DNA from: Macrostomum lignano
Lineage: Eukaryota
Direction of reading: 5' to 3'
NCBI GenBank assembly: GCA_002269645.1
Contig: NIVC01001322.1
Location: 1 to 64,000, forward strand
DNA: 64,000 nt
Notes under the pieces: generated by a model
What the model saw: only the letters and a program-made list of their open reading frames with translations
The model's database searches: none
What the model was told of the DNA's origin: nothing
Program-made: the position numbers and the translations under genes
In this document: in pieces, positions 9,501 through 53,186 of the stretch
Numbering within the stretch: the stretch's first letter is position 1
Layout: every line of letters starts with the position of its first letter

Positions 9501-9504
9501 GTAA

Positions 9505-14772: not shown

Positions 14773-14788
14773 TCCTCTCTCTCTATCT

Positions 14789-14824
<36 letters not shown>

Positions 14825-14825
14825 C
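14773..14825 (+). repeat. TC/(TCTA)n stack at the left edge of the array (9 TCTA tetramers)
   Basis: One TCTA at 14782-14785 plus eight contiguous at 14789-14820. Confidence 0.9.
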
Positions 14826-16119
14826 TTAATACTAAAGTTGGTGCGTTGTTTGTCTGTGTGTGTGTGTGTTTGTTGGATAACTCCTCCTAGAATACTTGCA
14901 AGTCAGCGTTGAAACTTAATACTAAAGTTGGTGCGTTGTTTGTCTGTGTGTGTGTGTGTTTGTTGGATAACTCCTCCTAGAATACTTGCAAGTCAGCGTT
15001 GAAACTTATATGGGAAAACTGCAAATTTTCCGAGGATGGCTTTAGGCTATTTTAATCTTTCATTTTCAATTTTTAAGATCCCTAAAAAAGCAGAAAATGG
15101 CGGTCTTGACCTTTGATAATCTTAATTGTCCCCTCTTTCTGCTTGGAGCTGAAAATTTGCATCAATTTTAGTGATTGCGCCATAAAATTTTTCTATCTTG
15201 GCAGTGTATTTTCTCTCAAGTGGGGGGATGGTCGCGTTCTCAGTGGCTGCGTGTGTACACTTGAACCCTGGCTCACTGACTGACTTTATAGACAATTGCG
15301 CAACTATTTGTGTTCTGTTTTTTAACAGGAAGCCCTGTGTATTTTTTGCACAGTGAAATTCAGTGCATTTTAATGCATAAACTTGCGAGCATCTTTAGCA
15401 GGCAGTGAACGTACACTCGATATTTCAATGCTTAAAATCAGAAAGTTTCAAACACTAACTGTTGCTCGAGTTTTGAACTTAGAGAGGAGAGACTTATATT
15501 GCTGGAAAGATCTTGCTGCAATGAGTTCGGGGATATAAGTTTTTTGCTTTAAATATGAAAATTAAATTCACAGCATTCAAGAAAAGATTTTCATACTTTT
15601 AGCTTTCTGCAAAGATTGTGCTCATTTTGGAGTTCAATGGGGGTTCGACCGACCCCCAATAGTTGGTGGGGGGGAGTTCAATTTCTAGCTGCACTGCGTA
15701 TTGGAAGGGGGGTCGGTTGCTGTGTATTTGAGGGTTGATTTAGATTGCGCAATCTTTTTGTTAACTTTAACTGAGGCTGATACTGACTGCCTGAGAAATA
15801 AGTTGCGCAATTTAATTGGTTCAATGTTTTTACGGCGTCTTTCAACACGCAGCTGTGTGTAGCTCTAACCCTAACCCTAACCTTAACCAATGAATTCTGA
15901 GAGCTGGGCTGTTTGACGTAGAAATTTCGATTTAGTCCAGTTTCACGGAGAGGATTTCTATTTCGCGGAGAATATTTCGATGGTGTTCAGTTTCACGGAG
16001 ACGATTTCTGTTGCGCGGAGAGGTGTTGGAAAATGGGATTCCGCTGATGGAGTTCAGGGAATGGAATTCCGCTGATTGGAGTTCTTCCCCTTTCTTCTCC
16101 GAAGGAGGAGTTGGCCTCG
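14773..16119 (+). mobile_element. Helitron unit 1 (family A)
   Basis: 5' ATACTAAAGTTGGTGCG; 3' GGAGGAGTTGGCCTCG; 90-bp 5' duplication. Confidence 0.8.
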
Positions 16120-17347
16120 TCTTAATACTAAAGTTGGTGCGTTGTTTGTCTGTGTGTGTGTGTTTGTTGGATAACTCCTCCTAGAATACTTGCAAGTCAG
16201 CGTTGAAACTTATATGGGAAAACTGCAAATTTTCCGAGGATGGCTTTAGGCTATTTTAATCTTTCATTTTCAATTTTTAAGATCCCTAAAAAAGCAGAAA
16301 ATGGCGGTCTTGACCTTTGATGATCTTAATTGTCCCCTCTTTCTGCTTGGAGCTGAAAATTTGCATCAATTTTAGTGATTGCGCCATAAAATTTTTCTAT
16401 CTTGGCAGTGTATTTTCTCTCAAGTGGGGGATGGTCGCGTTCTCAGTGGCTGCGTGTGTACACTTGAACCCTGGCTCACTGACTGACTTTATAGACAATT
16501 GCGCAACTATTTGTGTTCTGTTTTTTAACAGGAAGCCCTGTGTATTTTTTGCACAGTGAAATTCAGTGCATTTTAATGCATAAACTTGCGAGCATCTTTA
16601 GCAGGCAGTGAACGTACACTCGATATTTCAATGCTTAAAATCAGAAAGTTTCAAACACTAACTGTTGCTCGAGTTTTGAACTTAGAGAGGAGAGACTTAT
16701 ATTGCTGGAAAGATCTTGCTGCAATGAGTTCGGGGATATAAGTTTTTTGCTTTAAATATGAAAATTAAATTCACAGCATTCAAGAAAAGATTTTCATACT
16801 TTTAGCTTTCTGCAAAGATTGTGCTCATTTTGGAGTTCAATGGGGGTTCGACCGACCCCCCAATAGTTGGTGGGGGGGAGTTCAATTTCTAGCTGCACTG
16901 CGTATTGGAAGGGGGGTCGGTTGCTGTGTATTTGAGGGTTGATTTAGATTGCGCAATCTTTTTGTTAACTTTAACTGAGGCTGATACTGACTGCCTGAGA
17001 AATAAGTTGCGCAATTTAATTGGTTCAATGTTTTTACGGCGTCTTTCAACACGCAGCTGTGTGTAGCTCTAACCCTAACCCTAACCAATGAATTCTGAGA
17101 GCTGGGCTATTTGACGTAGAAATTTCGATTTAGTCCAGTTTCACGGAGAGGATTTCTATTTCGCGGAGAATATTTCGATGGTGTTCAGTTTCACGGAGAG
17201 GATTTCGATAGTGTTCAGTTTCATGGAGACGATTTCTGTTGCGCGGAGAGGTGTTGGAAAATGGGATTCCGCTGATGGAGTTCAGGGAATGGAATTCCGC
17301 TGATTGGAGTTCTTCCCCTTTCTTCTCCGAAGGAGGAGTTGGCCTCG
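16120..17347 (+). mobile_element. Helitron unit 2 (family A, near-identical to unit 1)
   Basis: Junction CTCG|TCTTAATACTAAAG; ends GGCCTCG. Confidence 0.8.
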
Positions 17348-19879
17348 TATATACTAAAGTTGACGCGTTGTTTGTCTGTCTGTATGTCTGTCTGTATGTC
17401 TGTCTGTATGTCTGTCTGTCATTTCGACAACTCCTCCTTGAATAGTGCCAACTCAGCGTTGAAACTTATATGGGAAGATTGGAAATTATCCGAGGTCGGC
17501 TATAGGCTATTTTAATTCTGAAATTTTAATTTCTAAGATCCTCAAAAAAGCAGAAAACTCTAATCTTGACCTTTGATAATCTTATTTGTCTCCTCTTTCT
17601 GCTCGGAGCTGAAAAAATGCATGAATTTTTAGTGATTGCGCCACAACTTTTCCCTATCTCTGTAGTGTATTTTCTTTCCAGTGGGGGGTGGGAGCGTTCT
17701 CAGTGGCTGCGTGTGTACACTTGGACCCTGGCTCACTGGCTGACTGTATAGATAATTGCGCAATGATATGGCTACTGATAAGTTTTCCTGCCTTTCAATG
17801 GGCAGCCCTGTGTATTTGTTGGACATTGAAATTCAATGCATCAACTTGCAAGCAGGCAGTAAACGTACACTCGATACTTCAATGCTATAAATCAGACAGT
17901 TTCAAACCCTAACTGTTCCTCGAGTTTTAAACTTTGAGAGGAGAGACTTATATTGCTGGAAAGATCTTGCAACGCTGAGTTTAGGGATATAAGTTGTTTG
18001 CTTTAAATATGAAAAGAAAAAGCACCGCAAAAAACTATTTCCATACTTTTAACTATCTGCATAAATTGTACTCAGTTTTGCGAGACGTAAGAGATAAAGT
18101 TGGGGGCGGGTTTAACTTCTCACAGCTGCTGTGTATTGGAGGGTTGATTTAGATTGCGCAATTTTTTTGTTAACTTTAACTGAGACTAATACTGACTGAC
18201 TGTGAAATCGGTTGCGCAATGAATTGATTCAATTAGTTCAATATTTTTATCAGTGCCTTTTAACACGAAGCTGTGCGTAGTTCTAACCCTAACCCTAACC
18301 CTAACCCTAACCCTGACCAATGAATCCGGAGAGTTGAGTTGTTTGACGGAAAAAATTCGATTGAGTCCAGTTTAGCGGAGACGATTTCAATGTTTTAATT
18401 TTGACGGAGAGAATTTTTGTTTCGTGGAGAGGATTTCGATGGTGTTCAGTTTCACGGAGAGGATTTTGATGATGTTCAGCCTCACGGAGAGGATTTCTGT
18501 TTCGCGGAGATAATTAATGATTGATTTCTGCTTTATGGAGACGATTTTGATGGATTTAAGTTTCAAGGAGAGGATTTCGAAGCAGTCCAGTTTCACGGAG
18601 AGGATTTCGAAGGAGTCCAGTTTCACGGAGAGGATATCGATGGTTTTCAGTTGCACGGACAGGATTTCTGCTTCGCGGAGAAGATCTTGATAGATTTGGC
18701 ATCTTCAATCAGTCAGAGAAGAGAGTAAAGAGAAGAATGAAAAGAGAAGAGAGATGAAATGATAGAAAGCAGAGTAGAAATGAGTGGAGAGATTAGACAT
18801 GAAAGATGGGAGAGAAGAGGGGAGTAAGGCGGGAACGAAGGAGAGAGAAGAGAAGAGAAGAGAGGAGATGAAGGGAGAGGATATGAGAGAGGAGATATGA
18901 GATAGCAGAGAGGAGACAGGAGAGAGAAGAAAGGAGGGATAAGAGTGTACAGAGGCAATAGAAGAGAGGAAAGAGAGGAGAGAGGTGAGAGGTGAGAGGA
19001 GAGAGATGAAAGATCAGAGATCAGAGATTTAAGAGAAGAAAGTAGTGAGGAGAAAGAAGAGGGTAAAGATGAGAGTGCAGAGAGGAGAGAAACGAGAGGA
19101 GACAGGTGGTAGAAAGGAGTGTAAAAAACAGGAGATAAGAAAGGAGAGGGTGAGAGTGAGAGCATATACGAAAGTGTAAAAGGGGAGCAGAGGAGAGAGA
19201 ATAGATAAGTGAGTAGAGAAGAGATATGAGAGAGGAAAGACGAGGGGAGAGAGGAGACAGGAGAGAGTAAATTTGAAAGACCTGGGAGAAGAGATAAATA
19301 AGATAGTACAGATGAGAGGAGAGAGAGGAGAGAAGAGAGAATTGAGAGGAGAGGAGACAGGTGATGCAGTAGAAAGGAGGGAAGAAAAATGGGAGATAAG
19401 AAAGGAGAGGTTGAGAGCGTATAAGAGATACGAGAAATGAGAGCAGAGAGAAGAGAGAAAAGGGAAGAGAGAAAGTAGAGCGGAGACGATAGATAAGTGA
19501 TTAGAGATGAGATATGAGAGAGGAGAGAAAAGGGGAGAGATAAGATAGAAGATAGGAGAGTAGACAGGAGAGGGTACAGAAGAAAGACGAGGGAGAAGAG
19601 ATAAATAAGGGAGTAGAGATAAATAAGAGAGTAGGGGTAGAGATGAGATGAGAGAGAGGAGAGAGAAGCGAGTCACGATAATAGCGAAGAGAGGAGAGAG
19701 TAGATATGAGAGACGTAAGAGTCTTTGAGCTATGGTCTTTGAAAGGTTTGTAAAGAATTTGGAGACGATTTGGAAGATGGGGTTAAAGACATGGAATTTT
19801 CAGTTGATGGATAATTCAGGGAATGGAATTCCGGTGATGGAGTTCTTCCCTTTCTCCTCCGAAGGAGGAGTTCCACTCG
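17348..19879 (+). mobile_element. Helitron unit 3 (family B)
   Basis: Starts TATATACTAAAGTTGACG; hairpin CTCCTCC-GAA-GGAGGAG at 19854-19870, then TTCCACTCG. Confidence 0.8.
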
Positions 19880-22099
19880 TATATACTAAAGTTGACGCGT
19901 TGTTTGTCTGTCTGTATGTCTGTCTGTATGTCTGTCTGTCATTTCGACAACTCCTCCTTGAATAGTGCCAACTCAGCGTTGAAACTTATATGGGAAGATT
20001 GGAAATTATCCGAGGTCGGCTATAGGCTATTTTAATTCTGAAATTTTAATTTCTAAGATCCTCAAAAAAGCAGAAAACTTGAATCTTGACCTTTGATAAT
20101 CTTAATTGTCCCCTCTTTCTGCTTGGAGCTGAAAAATGCATGAATTTTTAGTGATTGCGCCACAACTTTCCCTATCTCTGTAGTGTATTTTCTTTCCAGT
20201 GGGGGGTGGGAGCGTTCTCAGTGGCTGCGTGTGTACACTTGGACCCTGGCTCACTGGCTGACTTTATAGATAATTGCGCAATGATATGGCTACTGATAAG
20301 TTTTCCTGCCTTTCAATGGGCAGTCCTGTGTATTTGTTGGACATTGAAATTCAATGCATCATCTTGCAAGCAGGCAGTGAACGTACACTCGATACTTCAA
20401 TGCTATAAATCAGACAGTTTCAAACGCTAACTGTTCCTCGAGTTTTAAACTTTGAGAGGAGAATCTTACATTGCTGGCAAGATCTTGCAACGCTGAGTTC
20501 GGGGATATAAGTTGTTTGCTTTAAATATGAAAAGAAAAAGCACAGCATTTGAAAAACTATTTCCATACTTTTAACTTTCTGCAAAGATTGTACTTTAATC
20601 TGCAAAGATTGTTGGGGGGAGGGTTCAACTTCTCACTGCTGCTGTGTATTAGAGGGTTGATTTAGATTGCGCAATGTTTTTGTTAACTTTACCTGAGGCT
20701 GATACTGACTGACTGTGAAATCGGTTGCGCAATGAATTGATTCAATTAGTTCAATATTTTTATCTGTGCCTTTTAACACGAAGCTGTGCGTAGTTCTAAC
20801 CCTAACCCTAACCCTAACCCTAACCCTAACCCTAATGAATCTGGCGAGTTGAGTTGTTTGACGGAAAAAAATCGATTAAGTCAAGTTTAGCGGAGACGAT
20901 TTCAATGTTTAAATTCTGACGGAGAAGATTTCTGTTTCGTGGAGAGGATTTCGATGGTGTTCAGTTTCACGAAAGGATTTCCATGTGTTCAGTTTCACGG
21001 AGAGGATTTCGATCATGTTCAGCTTCACGGAGAGGCTTTCTGTTTCGCGGAGATAATTTATGATTGATTTCTGTTTTATGGAAACAATTTTGATGGATTT
21101 AAGTTTCAAGGAGAGGATTTCGAAGGAGTCCAGTTTCACTGAGAGGATTTCGATGGTTTTTAGTTGCACAGACAGGATTTTTGCTTCGCGGAGAGGATCT
21201 TGATGGATTTGGCATCTTCAATCAGTCAGAGAAGAGAGTAAAGAGAAGACTGAAAAGAGAAGAGAGAAGAGATGATAGAAAACAGAGTATAATTGAGTGG
21301 AGAGATTAGACATGACAGATTGGAGATGATAGGAGAGAGAATAGATGAGGGATAAGAGCGTACAGAGGCAATAGAAGAGAGGGGAGAGTAGAGGAGAAAG
21401 AAAGAGTGAGATGAGGAGATGAGGGATGAGAGAGCAGGGGAGAGAGGAGACAGGAGAGAGTACAGACGAAAGACTAGGGAGAAGATATAAATAAGGTAGT
21501 AAAGATGAGAGGAGAGAGAGGAGAGAGAAGCGAAAGGAGAAGAGAGTGAGGAGAGAGGAGAGAGATGAAAGGAGCAAGGAAAGGAGAAAAGAGAGAATGG
21601 AGAGAATAAAAAAGAGAGAAGAGAAGAGACAGGGGATAGTGAAAAGGAGGAAGAAAGATGGGAGACAAGAAAGTAGTGTCAGAGCGTATATGAAATATGA
21701 GAAATGAGAGCAGAGAGAAGAGAAAAGAGAAGAGAGAGAGAGAGGGTTAAGAGAGACGATAGATAAGTGAGTAGAGATGACATATGAGAGAGGAGAGAAG
21801 AGGGAGAGATAAGAGTGAAGAGAGGAGACAGAAGACAGGAGAAGGTACAGACGAAAGACGAGGGAGAAGAGATAAATAAGGGAGCAGGGGTAGAGATGAG
21901 ATGAGAGAGAGGAGAGAGGAGATATGAGAGACTTGAGAGTCTTTGAGCTATGGTCTTTGAAAGATTTTGTAAAGAATTTGGAGACGATTTGGAAGATAGG
22001 GTTAAAGACATGGAATTTCAGTTGATGGATATTTCAGGGAATAGAATTCCGGTGATGGGAGTTCTTCCCCTTTCTCCTCCGAAGGAGGAGTTCCACTCG
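19880..22099 (+). mobile_element. Helitron unit 4 (family B)
   Basis: Same termini as unit 3. Confidence 0.8.
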
Positions 22100-24669
22100 T
22101 ATATACTAAAGTTGACGTGTTGTTTGTCTGTCTGTGTGTGTGTCATTTCGACAACTCCTCCTTGAATAGTGGCAACTCAGCGTTGAAACTTATATGGGAA
22201 GATTGGAAATTATCCGAGGTCGGCTATAGGCTATTTTAATTCTGAAATTTTAATTTTTAAGATCCTCAAAAAAGCAGAAAACGGCGGTCTTGACCTTTGA
22301 TAATCTTAATTGTCCCCTCTTTCTGCTTGGAGCTGAAAATTTGCATGAATTTTTAGTGATTGCGCCACAACTTTTCCCTATCTCTGTAGTGTATTTTCTT
22401 TCCAGTGGGGGGTGGGAGCGTTCTCAGTGGCTGCGTGTGTACACTTGGACCCTGGCTCACTGGCTGACTTTATAGATAATTGCGCAATGATATGGCTACT
22501 GATAAGTTTTCCTGCCTTTCAATGGGCAGTCCTGTGTATTTGTTGGACATTGAAATTCAATGCATCAACTTGCAAGCAGGCAGTGAACGTACACTCGATA
22601 CTTCAATGCTATAAATCAGACAGTTTCAAACGCTAACTGTTCCTCGAGTTTTAAACTTTGAGAGGAGAAACTTATATTGCTGGAAAGATCTTGCAACGCT
22701 GAGTTCGGGGATATAAGTTGTTTGCTTTAAATATGAAAAGAAAAAGCACAGCATTTGAAAAACTATTTCCATACTTTTAACTTTCTGCAAAGATTGTACT
22801 TTAATCTGCAAAGATTGTTGGGGAGAGGGTTCAACTTCTCACTGCTGCTGTGTATTGGAGGGTTGATTTAGATTGCGCAATGTTTTTGTTAACTTTACCT
22901 GAGGCTGATACTGACTGACTGTGAAATCGGTTGCGCAATGAATTGATTCAATTAGTTCAATATTTTTATCTGTGCCTTTTAACACGAAGCTGTGCGTAGT
23001 TCTAACCCTAACCCTAACCCTAACTAATGAATCCAGAGAGTTGAGTTGTTTGACGGAAAAAATTCGATTGAGTCCAGTTTAGCGGAGACGATTTCAATGT
23101 TTTAATTTTGACGGAGAGAATTTTTGTTTCGTGGAGAGGCTTTCGATGGTGCTCAGTTTCACGGAGAGGATTTCGATGATGTTCAGCTTCACGGAGAGGA
23201 TTTCTGTTTCGCGGAGATAATTTATGATTGATTTCTGTTTTATGGAGACGATTTTGATGGATTTAAGTTTCAAGGAGAGGATTTCGAAGGAGTCCAGTTT
23301 CACGGAGAAGATTTCGATGGTTTTCAGCTGCACGGACAGGATTTCTGCTTCGCGGAGAGGATCTTGATGGATTTGGAATCTTCAAACAGTCAGAGAAGAG
23401 AGTAAAGACAAGAATGAAAAGAGTAGAGAGATGAGTGGGTAGAAAAGAGAGTAGAAATGAGAGGATTTCTGGAGAGGATTTCGATGGTTTTCAGTTGCAC
23501 GGACAGGATTTTTCTGCTTCGCGGAGAGGATCTTGATGGATTTGGCATCTTCAATCAGTCAGAGAAGAGAGTAAAGAGAAGAATGAAAAGAGAAGAGAGA
23601 TGAGATGAGATGATAGAAAACAGAGTAGAAATGAGACGAGAGATTAGACATGACAGATGGGAGAGAAGAGGGGAGTAAGGCGGGAACGAAGGAGAGAGAA
23701 GAGAAGAGGAGAGAGGAGACGAGAGGGGAGATATGAGATAGCAGAGGGAGACAAGAGAGATGATAGGAGAGAGAATAGAGATGAGGGATAAGAGCGTAAA
23801 GAGGTAATAGAAAAGAGGGGAGAGTTGAGGAGAAAGAAGGAGTGAGATGAGGGATGAGAGATGAGAGAGGAGGGGAGAGAGAAGAGAGGAGAAAAGAGGG
23901 GAGAAATGAGACAGGAGAGAGTAGAGACGAAAGACCAGGGAAAAGATATAACTAAGGTAGTATAGATGAGAGGAGAGAGAGGAGGGAGAGAAGCGAGAGG
24001 AGAAGAGAGAGAGAGGAGAGAGGAAAGAGATGAAAGATCAGAGATAAGAGAGTTAAGAGAAGGAAAGTAGTGAGGAGAGGAGAGATGAGAGAATGGAGAG
24101 GATAGAAAAGAGAGAAGAGAAGAGACAGGGGATAGTGGTAAGGAGGAAAGAAAGATAGGAGACAAGAAAGTAGAGTGTGAGAGCGTATATGAGATATTAG
24201 AAATGAGAAGCAGATAGGAGAGAAAAGAGAAGAGAGAGAGGGTTAAGAGAGACGATAGATAAGTAAGGAGAGACGACATATGAGAGAGGAGAGAAGAGGG
24301 AGAGATAAGAGAGAAGAGAGGAGACAGGAGACAGAAGTAAAGAGGAGAGATATGAGAGAAGAGAGGAGACAAGAGACAGGAGAGGGTACAAACGAAAGAC
24401 GAGGGAGAAGAGATAAATAAGGGAGTAGGGGTAGAGATGAGATGAGAGAGAGGAGAGAGAAGAGAGTCATGATAATAGCGAGTAGAAGAGAGAGGAGATA
24501 TGAGAGACGTGAGAGTCTTTGAGCTATGGTCTTTCAAAGATTTTGTAAAGAATTTGGAGACGATTTGGAAGATGGGATTCAAGTGGAGTTTCAGCTGATG
24601 GATTTCAGGGAATGGAATTCCGGTGATGGGAATTCTTCCCCTTTCTCCTCCGAAGGAGGAGTTCCACTC
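22100..24669 (+). mobile_element. Helitron unit 5 (family B)
   Basis: Starts TATATACT; ends hairpin + TTCCACTC. Confidence 0.8.
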
Positions 24670-25814
24670 TCTCTTAATTAATACTAAAAGTGGTGCGATG
24701 TTTGTCTGTTTGTCTGTTTGTCCGTTTGTTGCATAACTCCTCCCAGAATACTTGCAACTCAGCGTTGAAACTTATATGGGAAAACTGCAAATTTTCCGAG
24801 GATGGCTTTAGGCTATTTTAATCTTTCATTTTCAATTTTTAAGATCCCTAAAAAAGCAGAAAACGGCGGTCTTGACCTTTGATAATCTTAATTGTCCCCT
24901 CTTTCTGCTCGGAGCTGAAAATTGGCATAAATTTTGAGTGATTACGCCACAACTTTTTCCTATGTCGCCAGTGCATTTTCTCTCCTGTGGGGGAATGGGC
25001 GCGTTCTCATTGGCGGCGTGTGTACAATTGGACCCTGGCTCACTGGCTGACTTTATAGACAATTGCGCAACTATTTGTGTTCTGTTTTTTAACAGGAAGC
25101 CCTGTGTATTTTTTGCACAGTGAAATTCAGTGCATTTTAATGCATAAACTTGCGAGCATCTTTAGCAGGCAGTGAACGTACACTCGATATTTCAATGCTT
25201 AAAATCAGAAAGTTTCAAACACTAACTGTTGCTCGAGTTTTGAACTTAGAGAGGAGAGACTTATATTGCTGGAAAGATCTTGCTCATTTTGGAGTTCAAT
25301 GGGGGTTCGACCGACCCCCCCCCCCAATAGTTGGTAGGGGGGTTCAATTTCTAGCTGCACTGCGTATTGGAAGGGGGTCGGTTTCTGTGTATTGGAGGGC
25401 TGATTTAGATTGCGCAATCTTTTTGTTAACTTTAACCGACGCTGATACTGACTGCCTGAGAAATAAGTTGCGCAATTTAATTGGTTCAATGTTTTTACGG
25501 CGCCTTTCAACACGCAGCTGTGTGTAGCTCTAACCCTAACCCTAACCCTAACCAATGAATTCTGAGAGCTGGGCTGTTTGACGGAGAAATTTCGATTTAG
25601 TCCAGTTTCACGGAGAGGATTTCTATTTCGCGGAGAATATTTCGATGGTGTTCAGTTTCACGGAGAGGATTTCGATAGTGTTCAGTTTCACGGAGACGAT
25701 TTCTGTTGCGCGGAGAGGTGTTGGAAAATGGGATTCCGCTGATGGAGTTCAGGGAATGGAATTCCGCTGATTGGAGTTCTTCCCCTTTCTTCTCCGAAGG
25801 AGGAGTTGGCCTCG
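24670..25814 (+). mobile_element. Helitron unit 6 (family A)
   Basis: Starts TCTCTTAATTAATACTAAAAGTGGTGCG; ends GGCCTCG. Confidence 0.8.
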
Positions 25815-33721: not shown

Positions 33722-36011
33722 TACATATACTAAAGTTGACGCGTTGTTTGTCTGTCTGTCATTTCGACAACTCCTCCTTGAATAGTGGCAACTCAGCGTT
33801 GAAACTTATATGGGAAGATTGGAAATTATCCGAGGTCGGCTATAGGCTATTTTAATTTTAAAATTTCACATTTTAAGATCCCTAAAAAAGCAGAAATAGT
33901 AGAACAATAGGGGAATATGCCCATCTTGCGTAATTTGCATTGATTGCGCCACAACAGCTGGCCTATCTGTGCAGTGTATTCTTTCAGCTAAAGGGGTGTA
34001 GCAGGGCCAAATTACATAAATTTTTAGCGATTGCGCCACAACTTTTTTCTATCTCGCCAGTGTATTTTCTCTCCAGTGGGGGGATGGTCGCGTTCTCAGT
34101 GGCGGCGTGTGTACACTTGGACCCTAGCTAACTGGCGGACAGTGAAATTCAATGCATCAACTTGCGAGCCTCTTAGCAGGCAGTGAACGTACACTCAATA
34201 TTCCAATGCTTTAAATCAGAAAGTTTCAAATGCTAACTGTCTCTCGATTTTTTAACCTTCAGAGGAGAGACTTATATTGCTGGAAAGATCTTGCAACGCT
34301 GAGTTCAGGGATATAAGCGACCATTCCAAAAGTTGTGGAAAGATTGCGCCACAACTTTTTTCTATCTCGCCAGTGTATTTTCTCTCCAGTGGGGGGATGG
34401 TCGCGTTCTCAGTGGCGGCGTGTACACTTGGACCCTAGCTAACTGGCGGACAGTGAAATTCAATGCATCAACTTGCGAGCCTCTTAGCAGGCAGTGAACG
34501 TACACTCAATATACCAATGCTTTAAATCAGAAAGTTTCAAACGCTAACTGTTGCTCGATTTTTGAACTTTGAGAGACGAGACTTTTATTGCTGGAAAGAG
34601 CTTGCAGCGCTGAGTTCGGGGATATAAGTTGTTTGCTTTAAATATGATAATAACTAAAAATACGGCATTCAAAAAACGATTTCCATACTTTTGCAAAGAT
34701 TGTACTTATTTTTGCGACAGGTCAGAGATAAAGTTGGGGGGTTCAACGTCTACTTGCCACTGCGTATTGGAAGGGGGCGGTCGCTGTGTATTGGATGGTT
34801 GATTTAAATTGCGCAATCATTTTGTTAACTTGAACTCAGACTGATACTGACTTATTGAGAAATCGATTGCGCAATCTGTTGCTTCAATTAGTTCAATTTT
34901 TTATTATCGCTGCCTTTCAACACGCAGCTGTGTGTAGCTCTAACCCTAACCCTAACCCTAACCCTAGCCACTGAATCATGAGAGTTGAGTTCTGTCTGAC
35001 GAAGTAAATTTCGATTGAGTCCAGTTTCACGGAGAGGACGTTTTGTCTTCGGAGAGGACTTGGATGATGGAACTCGGGTCATGGAATTCAGCTAATGAAG
35101 TTCAGGGAATTGAATTCTGGTGATGGGAGTTCTTCCAATGGGAGAGAAAAGAGAGTAGATATGAGAGAGGAGAGATTAGAGATGACATACGGGAGAGAAT
35201 AGGAGAGTAAGGCGAGAATGAAGAGGGAGAGAGAAGCAAAAGGAGAAGAGAGAGAGGAGAGAGGAGAGAGATGAAATATCAGAGATAGAGAGTGTAGAGA
35301 GGAAAGTAGTGAGGAGAAGAGAGATGAGAGATGCGATGAGAAGAGATGAGTGAAAACATAAGAGAGAAGAGATTAGAGATTAGAGAAGAGAGGGGAGAAG
35401 ATGAAAAGAGAAAGGAGAGGAGAGAAGAGAGAATGGAGAGGATAGAAAAGAGAGAAGAGAAGAGACAGGGGATAGTGGTAAGGAGGAAAGAAAGATGGGA
35501 GACAAGAAAGTAGAGTGTGAGAGCGTATATGAGATATAAGAAATGAGAACAGAAAGAAGAGAAAAGAGAAGAGAGAGAGAGGGTTAAGAGAGACGATAGA
35601 TAAGTGAGTAGAGATGACATATGAGAGAGGAGAGAAGAGGGAGAGATAAGAGAGAAGAGAGGAGACAGGAGACAGTAGTGAAGAGGAGAGATATGAGAGA
35701 AGAGAGGAGACAAGAGGAGAGGGTACAGACGAAAGACGAGGGAGAAGAGATAAATAAGGGAGTAGGGGTAGAGATGAGATGAGAGAGAGGAGAGAGAAGA
35801 GAGTCACGATAATAGCGAAGAGAGGAGAAAGGAGATATGAGAGACGTGAGAGTCTTTGAGCTATGTTTTTTCAAAGTTTTGTAAAGAATTTGGAGACGAT
35901 TTGGAAGATAGGGTTCTAGACATGGAATTTCAGTTGATGGATATTTCAGGAAATGGAATTCCGGTGATGGGAGTTCTTCCCCTTTCTCCTCCGAAGGAGG
36001 AGTTCCACTCG
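33722..36011 (+). mobile_element. Helitron unit 11 (family B, composite)
   Basis: Starts TACATATACT; about 300-bp internal duplication (34030-34625); aborted 3' end near 35135 fused to an AG tract; B-type end. Confidence 0.75.
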
Positions 36012-38675
36012 TACATATACTAAAGTTGACGTGTTGTTTGTCTGTCTGTCTGTCTGTCATTTCGACAACTCCTCCTTGAATAGTGGCAACTCAGCGTTGA
36101 AACTTATATGGGAAGATTGGAAATTATCCGAGGTCGGCTATAGGCTATTTTAATTTTGAAATTTTAATTTCTAAGATCCTCAAAAAAGCAGAAAACTGCC
36201 TTTTTGACCCCCAATAACCTTCTTTGGCCACTCTGCCTGGGGCTGCAGCCAGTTTGTAAAAATAGCCACCCCAACCTCCGCCCGCGGGCCGCTGTGTATT
36301 GAGGGGTGGTGGGTGCGCGTGTTCTGCGTTCAATGCAAATAAAACCCCCGCGTGTCGGGGGGGTTCAGTTAAATTTAATGATTCCCCCGGAACGGGGGGT
36401 TGGGCTTGGGCTGAGTGTACATAGCTGTTGTGAACAGATAAAACTGTGCAGAGATTCAATTGGTTTTATTATCGGCCCTGTGTTATGTGTATTAGCTGGG
36501 CAGTGAAATTCAATGAACAAACTTGCGAGTCTGTCAGGCAAGCAGTCGGGAAATTTCAAACGCTAACTGTTTCTCGAGTTTTAAACTTTGAGAAGAGAAA
36601 CTTATATTGCTGGAAAGATCTTGCAACGCTGAGTTCGGGGATATAAGTTGTTTGCTTTAAATATGAAAAGAAAAAGCACAGCATTTGAAAAACTATTTCC
36701 ATACTTTGAACTTTCCGCAAAGATTGTACTCAGTTTTGCGAGACGTAATAGATAAAGTTGGGGGGAGGGTTCAACTTCTCACTGCTGCTGTGTATTGGAG
36801 GGTTGATTTAGATTGCGCAATGTTTTTGTTAACTTTATCTGAGACTGATACTGACTGACTGTGAAATCGGTTGCGCAATGAATTGATTCAATTAGTTCAA
36901 TAGTTTATCAGTGCCTTTTAACACGAAGCTGTGCGTAGTTCTAACCCTAACCCTAACCCTAACCAATGAATCCGGAGAGTTGAGTTGTTTGACGGAAAAA
37001 ATTGATTGAGTCCAGTTTAGCGGAGACGATTTCAATGTTTTAATTTTGACAAAGAGGATTTCTGTTTCGTGGAGAGGATTTCGATGGTGCTCAGTTTCAC
37101 GGAGAGGATTTTGATGATGTTCAGCTTCACGGAGAGGATTTCTGTTTCGCGGAGTTAAATTTATGATTGATTTCTGCTTTATGGAGACGATTTTGATAGA
37201 TTTAAGTTTCAAGGAGAGGATTTCGAAGGTGTTCAGTTTCACGGAGAGGATTTCGAAGGTGTTCAGTTTCACGGAGAGGATTTCGTTGATGTTCAGCTTC
37301 ACGGAGAGGATTTCTGTTTCGCGGAGATAATTTATGATTGATTTATGTTTTATGGAAACGATTTTGATGGATTTAAGTTTCAATGAGAGGATTTCGAAGG
37401 AGTCCAGTTTCACGGAGAGGATTTCGATGGTTTTCAGTTGCACGGACAGGATTTTTCTGCTTCGCGGAGAGGATCTTGATGGATTTGGCATCTTCAATCA
37501 GTCAGAGAAGAGAGTAAAGAGAAGAATGAAAAGAGAAGAGAGATGAGATGATAGAAAACAGAGTAGAAATGAGTGGAGAGATTAGACATGACAGATGGGA
37601 GAGAAGAGGGGAGTAAGGCGGGAACGAAGGAGAGAGAAGAGAAGAGGAGAGAGGAGATGAAGGGAGAGGATATGAGAGAGGAGATATGAGATAGCAGAGA
37701 GGAGACAGGAGAGAGAAGAAAGGAGGGATAAGAGCGTACAGAGGCAATAGAAGAGAGGAAAGAGAGGAGAGAGGTGAGAGGTGAGAGGTGAGAGGAGAGA
37801 GATGAAAGATCAGAGATTTAAGAGAAGAAAGTAGGGAGGAGAAAGAAGAGGGTAAAGATGAGAGTGCAGAGAGGAGAGAAACGAGAGGAGACAGGTGGTA
37901 GAAAGGAGTGTAAAAAACAGGAGATAAGAAAGGAGAGGGTGAGAGTGAGAGCATATAGGAAAGTGTAAAAGGGGAGAGAGAATAGATAAGTGAGTAGAGA
38001 AGAGATATGAGAGAGGAGAGATTCGAGATTAGAGAAGAGATGAGGGGAGATGAGAGGAGAGAAGAGAGAATGGAGAGGAGAGAAAAGAGAGGAGAGGAGA
38101 CAGGTGATGCAATAGAAAGGGAAGAAAGATGGTAGATAAGAAAGGAGAGGGTGAGAGTATATAAGAGATACGAGAAATGAGAGAAGAGAGAAAAGGGAAG
38201 AGAGAAAGTAGAGCGGAGACGATAGATAAGTGAGTAGAGATGACATATGAGAGAGGAGAGAAGAGGGAGAGAGAAGAGAGAAGAGAGGAGACAGGAGACA
38301 GAAGTGAAGAGGAGAGATATGAGAGAAGAGAGGAGACAAGAGACAGGAGAGGGTACAGACGAAAGACGAGGGAGAAGGGATACATAAGGGAGTAGAGATG
38401 AGAGGAGAGAGAGGAGAGACTAGATATAAGATAGCAAAGACGAGAGAGCAGAGATGAGAGACTAGAGATGGAAAGCAGATTAGAGAGAAGAGATAAGAGA
38501 CTACATTGTAGAGATAAGAGGGCAAAGAGGAGAGCAAAAAGGCTTTACAGAGGATTTGGAGATGATTTGGAAGATGGGATTCAAGTCATGGAGTTTCAGC
38601 TGATGGATTTCAGGGAATGGAATTCCGGTGATGGGAGTTCTTCCCCTTTCTCCTCCGAAGGAGGAGTTCCACTCG
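36012..38675 (+). mobile_element. Helitron unit 12 (family B)
   Basis: Starts TACATATACT; divergent GC-rich segment 36195-36545; B-type end. Confidence 0.75.
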
Positions 38676-41470
38676 TACATATACTAAAGTTCACGTGTTG
38701 TTTGTCTGTCTGTCTGTCTGTCATTTCGACAACTCCTCCTTGAATAGTGGCAACTCAGCGTTGAAACTTATATGGGAAAATTGGAAATTATCCGAGGTCG
38801 GCTATAGGCTATTTTAATTCTGAAATTTTAATTTCTAAGATCCTCAAAAAAGCAGAAAACGGCGGTCTTGACCTTTGATAATCTTAATTGTCCCCTCTTT
38901 CTGCTCGGAGCTGAAAATTTGCATGAATTTTAAGTGATTGCGCCATAAAATTTTGCTACCTTGGCAGTGTATTTTCTCTCCAGTGGGGGATGGGGCGTTC
39001 TAAATGGCTGCATGTGTACAATCGGACCCTGGCTCACCGGCTGACTTTATAGACAATTGCGCAAAGATTTGTGTTCTAATTTTCAATAGGCAGCCCTGTG
39101 ATTTTGTTGAACCTTGAAATTCAATGCATAAACTTGCGGGCCTCTTTAGCAGGCAGTGAACGTACAATTGATATTTCAATGCTTTAAATCAGAAAGTTTC
39201 AAACGCAAACTGTTGCTCGAGTTTTTAACTTTGAGAGAAAAAATTAATATTGCTGGAAAGAACTTGCAAAGCTGATTTCAGGGATATAAATTGTTTGCTT
39301 TAAATATGAAAAGAAAAAGCACAGCATTGAAAAAACTATTTCCATACTTTTAACTTTCTGCAAAAATTGTACTCAGTTTTGCGATACGTAATAGATAAAG
39401 TTTGGGGGAGGGTTCAACTTCTTACTGCTGCTGTGTATTGGAGGGTTGATTTAGATTGCGCAATGTTTTTCTTAACTTTAACTGAGACTGATACTGACTG
39501 ACTGTGAAATCGGTTGCGCCATCAATTTGTTTTATTATCTGTGCCTTTCAATAGGCTGCCCTGTGTAATAGCCGGCCTGTGTAATGAATGAATAAATTTG
39601 CGAGCCTCTTTGGCAGGCAGTGAACGTACACGCGATATTTCAATGCTTTAAAACGGGAACTTTCAAACGCTAACTGCTCTTCGAGTTCTAAACTTTAAGA
39701 GAAGATACTTATACTGCTGAAAAGATCTTGCAACGCTGAGTTCGAGGATATAAATTGTTTGCTATAAATATAAAGACTAAAAGAGCAGCATCAAAAAAAC
39801 TATTTCCATACTTTTTGCTTTATGCAAAGATTGTACTCATTTTTTGGTTCAATGCCCCCATCAGTTCGGCGTTCAATTTCTAACTGCTACTGCGTATTGA
39901 AAAGAGGTCGGTCTCTGTGTACTGGAGGGTTGATTTAGATTGCGCAATCTTTTTGTTAACTTTAACTGAGACTGATACTGACTGACTGAGAAATCGGTTG
40001 CGCAATCAATTGATTCAATTGGTTCAATTTTTATTTGAACACGCAGCTGTGTGTGGCTTTAACCCTAACCCTAACCCTAACAATAACCCTAACCAATGAA
40101 TCCTGATATTTATTTTTTTTGACGGAGAAAATTTCGATTGAGTCCAGTTTAAAAGAGAGAATTTCGATGGTTTTCAGTTTCACGGAAAGGATTTCGAAGG
40201 AGTCCAGTTTCACGGAGAGGATTTCGATGGTTTTCAGTTGCACGGACAGGATTTCTGCTTCGCGGAGAGGATCTTGATGGATTTGGCATCTTCAATCAGT
40301 CAGAGAAAAGAGTAAAGAGAAGAATGAAAGCAGAAGAGAGATGAGATGATAGAAAACAGAGTAGAAATAAGTGGAGATATTAGACATGACAGATTGGAGA
40401 GAAGAGGGGATTTAGGCGGGAACGAAGAGGGAGAGAGAAGAAAAGAGGAGAGAGGAGAGAAAATAGATTAGGGATAAGAGCGTACAGAGAAAATAGAAGA
40501 GAGGGGAGAGTAGAGGAGAAAGAAAGAGTGAGATGAGGGGATGAGGGATGAGAGAGGAGGGGAGACAGGAGAGACAAGAAAGGAGAAAAGAGGGGAGAAA
40601 GGAGAAAGGAGAGAGTAGAGACGAAGGACCAGTTAGAAGATATAAATACGGTAGTAGAGATGAGAGGAGAGATAGGAGAGAGAAGCGAGAGAAGAAGCGA
40701 GAGGAGAAGAGAAAGAGGAGAGAGGAGAGAGATGAAATAGATAAGAGAGTTAAGAGAGGAAAGTAGTGAGGAGAGGAGAGATGAGAGATGCGATGATAAG
40801 AGATGAGTGAGAACATAAGAGAGAAGAGAGAAGAGATTAGAGAAGAGAGGGGAGAAGATAAAAGGAGCAAGGGGAGGAGAAAAGAGAGAATGGAGAGGAT
40901 AGAAAAGAGAGAAGAGAAGAGACAGGGAAAAGTGGAAAGGAGGAAAGAAAGATTGGAGACAAGTAAGTGGAGTGTGAGAGCGTATATGAGATATGAGAAA
41001 TGAGAGCAGAGAGGAAAGAAAAGAGAAGAGAGAGAGGGTTAAGAGAGACGATAGATAAGTGAATAGGGATGACATATAAAAGAGGAGAGAAGAGGGAGAG
41101 ATAAGAGAGAAGAGAGAAGACAGGAGACAGAAGTGAAGAGGAGAGATATGAGAGAAGAGAGGAGACAAGAGACAGGAGAGGGTACAGACGAAAGACGAGG
41201 GAGAAAACATAAATAAGGGAGTACGGGTAGAGATGAGATGAGAGAGACGAGAGAGAGTAGAGTCACGAAAATTGCAAAGAGAGGAGAGAGGAAATATGAG
41301 AGACGTGAAAGTCTTTGAGCTATGGTCTTTGAAAGGTTTTGTAAAGAATTTGGAGACGATTTGGAAGATAGGGTTCAAGACATGGAATTTCAGTTGATGG
41401 ATATTTCAGGGAATGGAATTCCGGTGATGGGAGTTCTTCCCCTTTCTCCTCCGAAGGAGGAGTTCCACTC
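38676..41470 (+). mobile_element. Helitron unit 13 (family B, same architecture as unit 10)
   Basis: Starts TACATATACT; ends TTCCACTC. Confidence 0.75.
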
Positions 41471-42489
41471 TCTATATACTAAAGCTGACGTCGTGGTCCG
41501 GTGGTAGGGTTGGCCGGTGGGCCGGGTTTGTCGACGATCTCCTCCTAGGATTCTTGCAACTCAACTTTCAAACCGGTACCAAAACATGTCAAATGTCCCG
41601 ACGATGCTACAATTTAAAATTCATTTTCAAATTTCAATTTTAAGTGCTTCAAAAAAGCAGAAAACAGCACAAACCAGACAGCCAGATGTCTATATATCGC
41701 ATTCCATGGACTTCCTTCCCACTTGACGCTATTTTGTATGGTTGCGCCACAACTTTTCTCCTATCTCTGCAGTGTATTTCATTTCAGCTGGGGGAGGGTC
41801 GCCGGCACTTGAGAATTGGCGGCCTACTTGCTCAGTGTTAAAAAGGGGTGGAGGTGCACACTGCGCGAGAATGGATGGCTTGATTTTTTAACTCATCACA
41901 GAGTGTACATTGCGCTCTGCAAGTAAGAAACGGGAAAACTTGCACCTTAATTTCTGCTTTTAATTTTCAAGCTACAGAAAAGTGAATCACACCGTTGGAA
42001 AGAGTTTGAAAAACTGAACAGAATGGTATAATTTTCTGTTCCGAAATCTCAACTGCATCAGAGCAATTTGTCATAGAAAATTTCTTGATTTCAATTGTGA
42101 AAATGTTAAGTGGTTGGGGAGGGGTTTCATTAATTTCAATTCTGACTGTGCAATGCACAAGCCTAGACTCTCCCTGTGCATTTGGGGAGGTGCATGGGCT
42201 ATAGACTGTACTGTAGATCTTTACTGTACGCTTGCAAGTAACAAGGCCGACATAAATGAATAAATTCGGCTAAATGCAGTGTACATTTGTGAGAACCGGG
42301 CTGCGACAGTGATGGCGCAATGCATATGCATCAACGGGGGCAGGCGATCGTTTCAGTAGCTCAATTTCGCTGGCCCAAGAGCTAGGGTTAGGGTTACGAT
42401 ATGGAGTTCTGCAGATTCAACATTCCAACCATGGGATTCCGGGGATTTCAATTCAGCGGATTTCTCCTCCAACGGAGGAGTTCCACTCG
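41471..42489 (+). mobile_element. Helitron unit 14 (divergent family C)
   Basis: Starts TCTATATACTAAAGCTGACG; hairpin CTCCTCC-AAC-GGAGGAG + TTCCACTCG. Confidence 0.7.
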
Positions 42490-45400
42490 TATATACTAAA
42501 AATGAAAATCTTGCTTGCTTGCTTGTAATCGATTAGAGAAAAAATGGCTGGACCGATTTTCATGAGACTTGCACTGTTCGATCAGAAATTTTCCAGTGAC
42601 GGTACATGCATCTTGGCTAAGAAATTGCTCCATGTTAAAGGGATTAAATATTCGAAAAACATGCTTTTTTGCAAAGGTCAAGCAAACTTTTCGACTTGAA
42701 ATGCATTGTAAGAATGCTAGAGAAAAAACTGACTGGTTGAATTCTGATTCTGAAATAGATTGCATCATAACTGAATTGTAACTCCGACTTAAATTGCGTC
42801 ACAGTATTGAAAATGCAGTGTGGAAGCGTAGCACCAGACTTGATTTAAATTGCGTAACCATATTGCTAACTGATACTGACTGACTGAGAAATTGATTATG
42901 TCATAACTGCCTCGTGTGATTTACTCTATGCTTGGAGTTTTGAAACTTATAATTATAAGTGCTAAAATTCATATTATCAAAACGATGAGAGCTAGCCTAG
43001 AGGTAAACAGACTGACTGCTAAATGCAGGGACGATGGTTCGAATTTTTAGAGAGTGGAATTTTTTTAATTAAAGCTTTTTAACACCAAGAAGAAAACTAA
43101 AAAATCATAGAAGCGTCATGTAAAAAATCATAGAAGCGTCATGTAAAAAATCATGAAAGCGTCATGAAAAAAAATCATAGAAGCGTCATGTAAAAATCAT
43201 AGAAGCGTCATGAAAAAATCATAGAAGCATCATGTAAAAATCATAGAAGCGTCCTGCAGAAATCGTAGAAGCATCATGTAAACAAGCATAGAAGCGTCAT
43301 GTAAAAATCATAGAAGCGTCATGTAAAAAATCATAGAAGCGTCATGTAAACAATCATAGAAGCGTCATGAAAATATCATAGAAGCGTCATGTAAAAAATC
43401 ATAGAAGCGTCATGTAAACAATCATAGAAGCGTCATGTAAAAAATCATAGAAGCGTCATGTAAACAATCATAGAAGCGCCATGCAAAAAATCATAGAAGT
43501 GTCATGTAAAAAATCATGGAAGCGTCATGTAAAAATCATAGAAGCGTCATGAAAAAATCATGGAAGCGTCATGTAAAAAATCATGGAAGCGTCATGTAAA
43601 AATCATAGTAGCGTCATGTAAAAAATCATAGAAGCGTCATAAAAAAAATCATAGAAGCGTCATGAAAAAAACATAGGAGCGTCATGAAAAAATCATAGAA
43701 GCGTCATGTAAAAATCATAGAAGCGTCATGTAAAAAATCATAGAAGCGTCCTGCAGAAATCGTAGAAGCGTCATGAAATAATCATAGAAGCGTCATGTAA
43801 AAAGCATAGAAGCGTCATGTAAAAAGTCATGGAAGCGTCATGTAAAAATCATAGTAGCGTCATGTAAAAATCATAGAAGCGTCATGAAAAAATCATAGAA
43901 GCGTCATGAAAAAAACATAGGAGCGTCATGAAAAAATCATAGAAACGTCATGTAAAAATCATAGAAGCGTCATGTAAAAATCATAGAATCGTCATATAAA
44001 AAGCATAGAAGCGTCATGTAAACAATCATAGAAGCGTCATGAAAAAATCATGGAAGCCTCATGTAAAAATCATAGAAGTGTCATGTAAAAAATCATGGAA
44101 GCGTCATGTAAAAATCATAGTAGCGTCATGTAAAAAATCATAGAAGCGTCATGAAAAAATCATAGAAGCGTCATGAATAAATCATAGAAGCGTCATGAAA
44201 AAAACATAGGAGCGTCATGAAAAAATCATAGAAGCGTCATGTAAAAATCATAGAAGCGTCATGTAAACAATCATAGAAGCGTCCTGCAGAAATCGTAGAA
44301 GCGTCATGAAATAATCATAGAAGCGTCATGTAAAAAGCATAGAAGCGTCATGTAAAAAATCATGGAAGCGTCATGTAAAAATCATAGAAGCGTCATGTAA
44401 AAATCATAGAATCGTCATATAAAAAGCATAGAAGCGTCATGTAAACAATCATATAAGCGTCATGTAAACAATCATAGAAGCGTCATATAAACAATCACAG
44501 AAGCGTCATGAAAAAATCATGGAAGCGTCATGTAAAAATCATAGAAGTGTCATGTAAAAAATCATGGAAGCGTCATGAAAAAATCATAGAAGCCTCATGA
44601 AAAAATCATAGGAGCGTCATGAAAAAATCATAGAAGCATCATGTAAAAATCATAGAAGCGTCCTGCAGAAATCGTAGAAGCGTCATGAAATAATCATAGA
44701 AGCGTCATGAAATAATCATAGAAGCGTCATGTAAAAAGCATAGAAGCGTCATGTAAAAATCATAGAAGCCTCATAAAAACTAATGAAAGTGTCATTTAAA
44801 AAATTAAGAAGCATCATGGAAGAATAAAAGAAGTGTAATGTAAAAATCAAAAGAAGCGTCATGTCAGACATGAAGGGTGTCATGTAAAAATGAAATGCAG
44901 CTATAATGCTGTGCTGGGGAGAAAAACTGAGACGTAAAGGCTCTCAGAGAATAACTGAGATTACGAGGGGGGGGGTTGTTTCTGGGATCTCAAAGAAAAA
45001 GTCAGAAGCTACTTCAAAGTTCATGTACTTTACTCAATTTTTTATTGCATTCTTTGTTGGCTCGCCATGGGGGGGGTGCTGATAGAAGAAGAGTCATGTA
45101 AAAAATAAAAGTAGCACTATGTATACATAAAAGAAAAGTCATGTCGAAGTTAAAAGATTCATTTGGGAATTGCTACGATGTCAAAGCTTGGTGGAAATCG
45201 TTATAGTGCTGTGATTCTTAAAGAAGGAATCACTAAAATGTCAAGGCTTAGGGGAGAAGAATTGCTGAGATTTCAAGGCTTTAGGTTGGGTTAAAGTTAG
45301 GTTTAGGTCAGGTGTGGGTTGAGGGTTATATTTTATCGGGTTTCAAGGTTAACAGTGGATTTTTTAGATTTCAAGTTTTATGGGGGCCATCGCTGACATG

Positions 45401-45900
45401 TCAAGGCTTACGGGGGGGGATAGCTAAGATGTCAAGGCTCACGGGGGTATAAATGAGATTTCAAGGCTAAAGTCAGAAGCTACATGTAGTTTATTGAAAA
45501 CTTTTTATTACATTATTTGATGCCTCCTCAGGCGAGGGATCGCTGATAAAAAAAGCGTTATGTAAAAAATAAAAGAAGCTTATCGCTATAATGCTGTAGT
45601 AGTGCTATAATGACTCTTAGAGAGAATTACTGAAATTTCAATGCTTTAGGGTTAGGTTAGGGTTAGGGTTAGGGTTAGAAGGTTGACAGATATTTTTAGA
45701 TTTCCAAGGCTTATTGGGGCATTGCTGAGATGTCAAGGGGGGAAGTTGATATGTTAAAGCTGGGGGGGGGGAATTACTGACATGTCAAGGCTTACAAGGT
45801 TTGACAGGAGATTTTTTAAGATTTCAAGGATACATGTAGCTTATTAAAAAAACGTGTATAGCATTTCTTTGGCTCCCCAACGGGGGGCGTAGATTGCTAG
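42490..45900 (+). mobile_element. Helitron unit 15 (divergent family D, satellite-bearing, canonical CTAG end)
   Basis: Starts TATATACTAAAAATG...(GCTT)n; hairpin GCTCCCC-AAC-GGGGGGC at 45872-45888; CTAG at 45897-45900, then T. Confidence 0.7.
43100..44780 (+). repeat. 21-22-bp satellite (AAAAATCATAGAAGCGTCATGT), roughly 75-80 copies, inside unit 15
   Basis: Direct reading; decays toward about 44890. Confidence 0.95.
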
Positions 45901-46130
45901 TTGATTCTAGAAATTCAAAATTATTTGTGTAAATAAGTTTTGTTCTTGATTGCAGTTTTTAAAAATGCTTCAAGAATAAGTGCTACTAAAATTCCATTCA
46001 AATTCTATGAAACTGTTCAACGTTACTAAGCTTTTGAAAAATTTTAGTTTTTTAGAGACAAGACTTTTTAACATGCAGCTAACGTATTAATAATGTAACA
46101 GCGGTCAGGCCCCAATTAAGATTTCATGCA
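45901..46130. repeat. Resumption of segmental-duplication copy 2 after the Helitron array
   Basis: Matches about 4990-5200 and 5605-5680 of copy 1. Confidence 0.75.
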
Positions 46131-46369
46131 TTCCCCAAAATCCTCCTGGACCCGTGCTCGCCTCCGCAACCTTACCCTAGACGAGCCGCCCCTTCCCTTG
46201 GATTGGCAGCAGTCCATCCAACAAATACGAGCGTCAAGTTACATGTAACAGAAGTCCAAATCCCAGATTGATCGAAACTCATCCCTAATTCATAACTGCG
46301 GTAACAGCCGTCGCCACGACAACCCCAGTTGAAATTCTAAACGACAATAGCAAGTTAAACCGCCTAAAT

Positions 46370-53154: not shown

Positions 53155-53186
53155 TTTGTCTTCTTCTGAAGAATCCTCGTCGCCAA

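Follow-up and report, generated by a model that had tools for sequence, protein, structure and literature searches.

A 31-kb head-to-tail stack of non-coding Helitrons from at least five families in the flatworm Macrostomum lignano

We describe a stack of transposable elements in the flatworm Macrostomum lignano (assembly GCA_002269645.1), found in a window of 64,000 nucleotides that covers positions 1 to 64,000 of the forward strand of contig NIVC01001322.1. At window positions 14773-45900 (31 kb), where the base composition is strongly skewed, 15 non-coding rolling-circle transposons (Helitrons), numbered U1 to U15 from left to right, stand head-to-tail, all on the plus strand. We give about an even chance to the reading that this array was built mainly by integration directed to the ends of resident Helitrons, with local duplication and possibly movement of the whole composite in addition. 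The joins and ends described below are observed directly, and from them we infer the order of events and the targeting mechanism.

The units were delimited by motifs at their two ends. The 5' motif ATACTAAAR, for which the conserved unit-start sequence is ATATACTAAA, has 16 plus-strand matches in the array and one elsewhere in the window (~1.3 expected by chance); the 16 correspond to the 15 unit starts plus one copy from an internal 90-bp duplicate in U1. The 3' motif GGAGGAGTTSSMCTC, also written GGAGGAGTT(CCA/GGC)CTC, matches 14 times within the array and nowhere else in the window (0 expected). Since a 5' leader of 2-18 nt is the sole spacer between each 3' end (..CTCG) and the following ATACTAAA, host DNA is absent between the units. 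This is true of 14/14 joins in the window, and the probability of a shared orientation by chance is 2^-14. An earlier note on this DNA had claimed 15 same-orientation units from at least four families with no host DNA between them; the units and joins were confirmed, and the number of families is at least five. These are alpha (U1, U2 and U6, to which U8 is added), beta (U7), gamma (U3-U5 and U9-U13), delta (U14) and epsilon (U15). Pairwise identity between units ranges from ~60% to 99.9%. The distance between U1 and U2 (Kimura two-parameter) is 0.001 (0.1%) over the first 720 bp, and U3-U5 differ by 2-4%.

The unit layout consists of a short leader, then ATACTAAAGTTG.., a (TGTC)n microsatellite at ~24 nt, a conserved core of ~700 bp, one telomere-like (CCCTAA)3-6 block and 30-bp tandem repeats; a long purine-rich tract is present in most units. 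The 3' end of U1-U14 is a 7-bp hairpin (CTCCTCC-loop-GGAGGAG) followed by 9 nt ending in CTCG, a variant of CTRR, and the hairpin is weakened in the alpha units. We found no long open reading frame (ORF) with coding character in the array. Scans for tRNA genes and Rfam families were negative, a protein search using a junction-spanning ORF returned no match, and a metagenome scan with the 3' hairpin gave chance matches only.

Independent evidence on the element ends comes from a second array. A region paralogous to window positions 1-6670 (~96% identity) lies on contig NIVC01000084.1 (loci L007 and L006); precisely at window 3009/3010 (minus strand; empty site ..CTTGACA^TCATTACC..) it contains an additional ~15.9 kb. 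With joins marked by a slash, the filled site reads ..CTTGACA/TCCATCACAATATACTAAATC ... CCCCAACGGGGGGCGTAGATTGCTAG/TCATTACC.., and the reference is also written ..GACA/TCCATCACAATATACTAAA....GATTGCTAG/TCATTACC. The same site is empty in three copies, namely the window, its 99.7% identical sister contig (L008/L011) and a third copy (L010) that is ~97% identical to the window. The empty site fixes the start of the first inserted unit, R1, at A/TCCATCAC.., and the filled/empty pair shows an A^T target, a 5'-TC end, a 3' hairpin followed by CTAG and no target-site duplication (TSD). The Helitron identity proposed in the earlier note is thereby established, and copies of the locus differ, at a precise A^T site, by the entire second array.

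The insert comprises, in order, R1; a 15-nt orphan 5' stub and R2; R3, with an extra internal 3' end; R4; 2955 bp that were not seen; and R5, which resembles U15. Every visible join reads CTAG/TC, and the four joins of this array, as in the window, are precise, in one orientation and between different families. The last 2.7 kb of the insert are 88-90% identical to U15, and U15 shares the end ..GATTGCTAG at 45900, followed by T. An independent copy, whose flank is different, thus defines the right end of the window array as a true Helitron 3' end (..CCCCAACGGGGGGCGTAGATTGCTAG/T). A TAGAAAT 7-mer that occurs at both edges of the window array (14767-14773, and 45908-45914, 7 nt past the right edge) was judged coincidental, as the independent copy places the end of U15 at CTAG. 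The R families are 60-75% identical to the window units over the common core, so that all belong to one broad group of non-autonomous Helitrons. R4 differs from R1 and R2 by 9% while the flanks of the filled and empty sites differ by ~3.6%; divergence among the units of the second array thus predates their arrival at this site, which happened either singly, with each unit landing on the same nucleotide, or all at once in a preformed composite.

The telomere-like repeat is in C-strand orientation, with one block per unit, in U1-U13 (15865-40080), and in the opposite, G-strand orientation (TTAGGG) in U14 (42385-42396), U15 (45655-45678) and R5 (L006 ~2470-3010). A 22-bp satellite, AAAAAATCATAGAAGCGTCATG (~79 copies), lies inside the epsilon Helitron of both arrays (window 43099-44863; L006 1-1700).

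With regard to class, the units are canonical-type (Helitron1/HLE1) non-autonomous Helitrons. The 5'-TC terminus is present, with nine window units that lack TC read as truncated. U15, R1, R2, R3 and R5 end in a G/C hairpin followed by 10-11 nt that end in CTAG, and variant ends such as CTTG have been published for Helitrons (PMC4778049). The edges of the window array (A/TCC on the left, CTAG/T on the right) agree with A^T insertion without a TSD. The order of 5' microsatellite, central tandem repeats and 3' palindrome is also that of Helentron/HINE elements, a resemblance of layout only. The empty site (..GACA^TCAT..) is not the TT or T-rich target of that group. Subterminal inverted repeats (subTIRs) 2-4 nt from the 5' end were not found, the sole inverted match being an 11-nt copy of the hairpin arm located 53-82 nt inside the 5' end, with no such match in U15. 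A bivalve or mollusc Helentron/HINE identity, considered from the layout (PMC7492417), was therefore ruled out by the A^T empty site, the TC...CTAG ends, the missing subTIRs and the M. lignano host.

The 5' leaders form two classes. All leaders longer than 5 nt start with TC, and these belong to U1, U2, U6, U7, U10 and R1-R4. The leader of U1 (14824-16119; 3' end GGAGGAGTTGGCCTCG) is TCTTA followed by ATACTAAAG; U2 (16120-17347) has the same full TC leader, with the join CTCG/TCTTAATAC. U6 (24672-25814) carries TCTTAATTA, in which TAAT is duplicated compared with U1 and U2. In U7 (25815-27463; hairpin loop ATCG) the leader is TCC, TCCTAATACT and TCCTA; the repeated TCCTAATACT (two copies, orphan stubs before the real 5' end) overlaps the ATACT of the conserved motif. 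U10 (31276-33721; 3' end CCACTCTCG) reads TCTATAT and is the sole gamma unit with an intact TC leader (TCTATATATAC). The leaders of the second array are TCCATCACAAT in R1, TCACAAT in R2 and R4, and TCCAAT in R3.

Nine short leaders all start with TA directly after the preceding CTCG. They read TAT in U3 (17348-19879; join CTCG/TATATAC), U4 (19880-22099; also TATATAC), U5 (22100-24671; 3' end CCACTCTC without the final G, alternative end 24669) and U15 (42490-45900; TATATACTAAAA), TAA in U8 (27464-28950; TAAATAC), and TACAT in U9 (28951-31275), U11 (33722-36011), U12 (36012-38675) and U13 (38676-41472; 3' end CCACTCTC, alternative end 41470), the last four sharing the start TACATATAC. These classes reproduce those of the earlier note, in which U10 begins with an intact TCTATATATACTAAAG at 31276, U3, U4, U5 and U15 begin with TATATACTAAA, and U8, U9, U11, U12 and U13 begin with TA. 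The start of U14 (41473-42489) can be read as TA-starting (TATATAC) or, if U13 ends at 41470, as TC-starting (TCTATATAC), because the related unit U10 shows that U13 may end in CCACTCTC. When compared with the intact U10 end, U3, U4 and U5 lack TCTA, as expected of a cut at the A^T site, and U15 does likewise by analogy. Only TC is missing from U9, U11, U12, U13 and U8, and the cut in these five units would therefore be at C^T rather than A^T.

Several units are mosaic or rearranged. U8 is chimeric, with an alpha-like 5' part and a gamma-type 3' end; the 5' half of U11 is rearranged; ~340 bp of U12 are replaced (unit positions 194-530); and U15 contains the 22-bp satellite and extra internal 3'-like hairpins upstream of its canonical hairpin and CTAG at 45900, which host T follows. 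U13 is the sister of U10 (95%), whereas U9 is the sister of U3-U5, and yet U13 and U9 have the TACAT end in common. This conflict between end type and body tree points to mosaic sources or local homogenisation. The block duplication of U10 and U13 suggested as possible in the earlier note, taken here to include their neighbours, did not hold, given that the preceding units and the joins differ.

Orphan TC-starting pieces stand directly upstream of complete 5' ends, as is seen in self-insertion composites. They are a 15-nt TCTAAATATACTAAA before R2, TCCA before R1, TCC and TCCTAATACT before U7, and TCT before U1. The perfect 90-bp tandem duplicate at the 5' end of U1 (14825-15004), bounded by CTTA microhomology, is a further case, and it resembles the 'multiple 5' termini' of fungal Helitrons, though the initial T is missing from its second copy. 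Junctions inside the arrays (U7, U6 and R2) have stubs as well, so the stubs either travel with elements or arise internally.

The reading to which we give an even chance would proceed as follows. An incoming element would join a resident Helitron at the boundary between host A and the resident's TC (host-A^TC), or a few nucleotides inside the TA-rich 5' leader. Joining at the resident 5' end would yield a precise head-to-tail join in the same orientation. The resident TC leader would either be kept or be cut off, in which case a TA-starting unit and, to its left, an orphan TC-starting stub would result. Near-identical neighbours (U1-U2, U3-U5 and R1-R2) could reflect repeated insertion of one active family, or rolling-circle or tandem duplication, and a finished composite might be mobilised as a single Helitron that extends from its first 5' end to its final 3' end. 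Helitrons inserted right beside another, with 5' end abutting 3' end, have been reported (PMC4778049), and in Fusarium and Metarhizium self-insertion at the 5' end was proposed for multiple 5' termini, three-copy tandems and mobile composites (PMC5148889). The earlier note had placed each insertion at TCTA^T within the 5' end of the previous element or just before that end; the TA starts and the orphan TC stubs fit this, but the five units that imply a C^T cut do not fit TCTA^T.

The note's objection to a single rolling-circle event was well founded. The joins are as precise as in a single-family rolling-circle tandem array, but at least five families alternate and the same-orientation joins lie between different families; the single-family pattern suits only the sub-runs U1-U2, U3-U5 and R1-R2. 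Moreover, in the circular intermediate of Helitron transposition CTAG is immediately followed by TC (PMC4778049), and rolling-circle copying alone would thus not yield the CTCG/TA joins. Solo copies were absent from ~85 kb of M. lignano DNA outside the arrays, a small and local sample, and an nhmmer profile of the 5' ends detected none in the window flanks or in loci L006, L007, L010 and L011. Their absence from the ~85 kb fits strong clustering.

Several points weigh against end-directed stacking. Two arrays and zero solo elements were examined, and the native 5' end is not independently fixed for alpha, gamma or delta. The TACATATAC and TAAATAC starts imply C^T cuts instead of A^T. Because A^T is palindromic, a uniform orientation requires that the resident end also be recognised or that one strand be favoured, both of which are hypothetical. 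At least five insertions at one nucleotide within the time represented by ~3.6% divergence are less parsimonious than one composite insertion, and growth confined to the left edge does not predict the internal stubs.

The last consideration but one leads to the alternative that each array was built elsewhere and arrived as one giant Helitron, running from the leftmost 5' end to the epsilon terminator (hairpin and CTAG) and bypassing the ends in between. We regard this as quite possible, if on the unlikely side. The 15.9-kb multi-unit array is present or absent as a block at a precise A^T site among four copies of the locus, and for this array a single event is more parsimonious. Read-through would be suited by the epsilon unit with canonical CTAG at the right end of both arrays, and the internal window units carry variant CTCG, weakened hairpins are found in alpha, and extra internal 3' ends occur in U15 and R3; both the transposition of composites and read-through are documented (PMC4224331, PMC4778049, PMC5148889). 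However, the internal joins of the second array have a fully canonical CTAG that would need to be bypassed, the two arrays share the epsilon unit only (88-90%) and no common sub-array, and the origin of the first composite is left unexplained. End-directed stacking and composite movement are not exclusive, as a composite must first be built. It is improbable that a few founders were instead multiplied and shuffled in situ as a macrosatellite, mainly by unequal crossing-over, gene conversion and replication slippage. Such processes could account for the perfect 90-bp duplication in U1 with its CTTA microhomology, the adjacency of sister units, the mosaic units and the end variants at odds with body trees. 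They could not produce precise joins between unrelated families through unequal crossing-over; breakpoints coincide exactly with Helitron termini, a Mantel test for junction-spanning duplications was weak (r 0.31, p 0.056), and the second-array units differ from one another by more than could have accumulated since insertion. We give almost no credence to a long-read misassembly that collapsed or concatenated dispersed copies. The window starts at a contig end, the sister contig (99.7% identical) seems to break off within U3, and U1 and U2 are nearly identical, but fourteen different precise joins between diverged units are unlike misjoins, and a similarly built second array with clean flanks is present on an independent contig.

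The remaining alternative concerns the left edge, where a compound tract (14773-14823) follows host ..GTAGAAA and reads TCC (TC)3 TCTA TCT (TCTA)8 TCT before the U1 leader. The earlier note had counted nine TCTA at 14782-14820, and we reproduced this count exactly; eight are contiguous, one is set apart by TCT, and Tandem Repeats Finder (TRF) gives 11.8 copies. From nine tetramers and nine TA-starting units it had argued that each newcomer entered the TCTA^T of the leftmost element, so that the tract would tally nine insertions and the array would be a time series, youngest on the left. We consider this strict form very unlikely. The two counts of nine are reproducible, U3, U4, U5 and U15 lack exactly TCTA relative to U10, and the order of the tract (TC-type on the left, TCTA-type on the right) agrees with the stub model in kind, though not in number: ~5 TC and 3-4 TCTA are predicted, since 5/9 TA-starting units lack TC only, and 3 TC and 9 TCTA were observed. 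The count depends on the rule (8, 9 or 11.8), the start of U14 is ambiguous, and with one locus and several defensible counting rules the 9:9 match carries little weight. Stubs at internal joins, the conflict of the TACAT end with the body tree and the slippage of tetranucleotide repeats of at least 8 units count against a tally too. As for a time series, a crude age measure, the neighbour-joining terminal branch over the first 720 bp of 13 units, rises from left to right (rho 0.68, p 0.011) but is inflated by the rearranged U7, U11 and U12. The cleaner measure is the number of substitutions private to each of the eight gamma units across 694 clean columns (U3 11, U4 16, U5 2, U9 9, U10 0, U11 28, U12 32, U13 9), and it shows no trend from left to right (rho 0.14, p 0.73). 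In both arrays the two leftmost units are the most similar of all adjacent pairs (chance ~0.018), which is the sole point for left-edge growth, and a polarity of array growth is possible.

The left tract is thus a slippage-prone compound (TC)n(TCTA)n microsatellite and not a count of insertions. It is the sole TCTA microsatellite in the window, and none occurs in the comparison loci that were fetched. It could consist of orphan 5' leaders, a host microsatellite or part of the U1 leader, and orphan leaders may have seeded it. A wider proposal, which we put forward tentatively and think more probably wrong than right, is that M. lignano Helitrons prefer the 5' leaders of resident Helitrons and that arrays would grow mainly at one edge, shedding stubs that seed microsatellites, in which case the order of units and the types of stubs, not their number, would give a partial history.

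The surroundings of the array contain two minus-strand WSC-domain genes (3188-3903 and ~13107-14638) that match M. lignano proteins. The window encodes exactly the annotated protein P0035 of the first (3188-3903), and the second array lies ~180 bp past the stop codon of this gene. The second gene (13107-14638) is apparently unannotated and has a signal-peptide exon with its ATG at 14638. The left edge of the window array is 135 bp upstream of this start codon (gap 14639-14772), and the stack therefore sits in the promoter region of a WSC gene. The assembly holds at least four copies of the WSC-gene region: one 99.5-99.7% twin (L008/L011, NIVC01004494.1; window 1-13805) and two at ~97% (L010; L006/L007), one of these ~97% copies being inverted and ~100 kb away on the same contig. 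Past window position 6670 the 1.12-Mb contig NIVC01000084.1 is unrelated to the window and carries an ankyrin gene. A decayed head-to-tail join (..CTGCAAGCG/TATATACTAAAAGC..) lies on the minus strand at ~4980-5400, with the join itself at ~5086-5090; it is also present, more eroded, in the paralogous contig (L007 ~8400-8840), and it looks like what remains of a third, ancient array. To the right of the window array are a LINE-like remnant (~46100-47200), a Ty3/gypsy-type retrotransposon with frameshifted gag-pol ORFs on the minus strand (49492-53211) and a likely galactosyltransferase gene (~55613-57229).

We found no published description of Helitron arrays in M. lignano. The landing of Helitrons on resident 5' ends is supported here and has already been described on a smaller scale. 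Self-insertion at the 5' end was already proposed for fungal Helitrons (PMC5148889); the present arrays are longer and multi-family. What is new is the unusual length and family mixture of these flatworm stacks, together with the polymorphism of a whole array at a precise site. Helitron targeting, tandem arrays and DNA-shuffling composites have so far been mostly inferred from two- or three-element cases, and this locus offers long multi-family stacks with clean joins, two 5' end classes, stubs and array presence/absence within one assembly. As M. lignano is a model flatworm in which transgenesis is available, end-directed integration and composite transposition can be directly tested against each other. 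Annotators should be warned against treating such arrays as plain satellites or as elements of the Helentron type, since they are neither.

When compared with canonical Helitrons (Helibat/Helraiser, PMC4778049), the window units are alike in the TC start, the hairpin ~9-11 nt before CTAG, A^T insertion without a TSD and variant or extra 3' ends, and the window copies have no coding capacity. They differ in that most end in CTCG and not CTRR, and in their 5' tetranucleotide microsatellite, 30-bp tandem repeats, telomere-like block and purine-rich tract; an autonomous partner was not seen. HINE and DINE-1 elements (PMC7492417, PMC4067079) share with them the layout of a 5' module containing a (GTCY)-type microsatellite, tandem repeats in the centre and a palindrome in the 3' module, but the window elements target A^T and not TT, have TC...CTAG termini and lack a subterminal inverted repeat by the 5' end. 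The rolling-circle tandem arrays of Myotis, the Drosophila Y and plant centromeres (cited in 10.1101/2021.06.02.446622 and PMC5148889) are likewise head-to-tail 3'-5' copies, some inner copies being terminally truncated; a single family is described there, whereas at least five families alternate in the window, with 60-96% identity between units. The self-insertion composite is alike in its insertion at or into the resident 5' end, its orphan stubs ahead of a full 5' end and the option that the composite then moves whole. The reported composites hold two or three elements, as opposed to 15 and at least five in series here, with several stub types and, in the window, a possible stub-derived microsatellite. 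Integron cassette arrays and CRISPR arrays offer a functional analogy only: if growth at the 5' edge dominates, the order of units would partly reflect history, but the window array has no dedicated attachment site or leader, its units are selfish, and its polarity is weakly supported.

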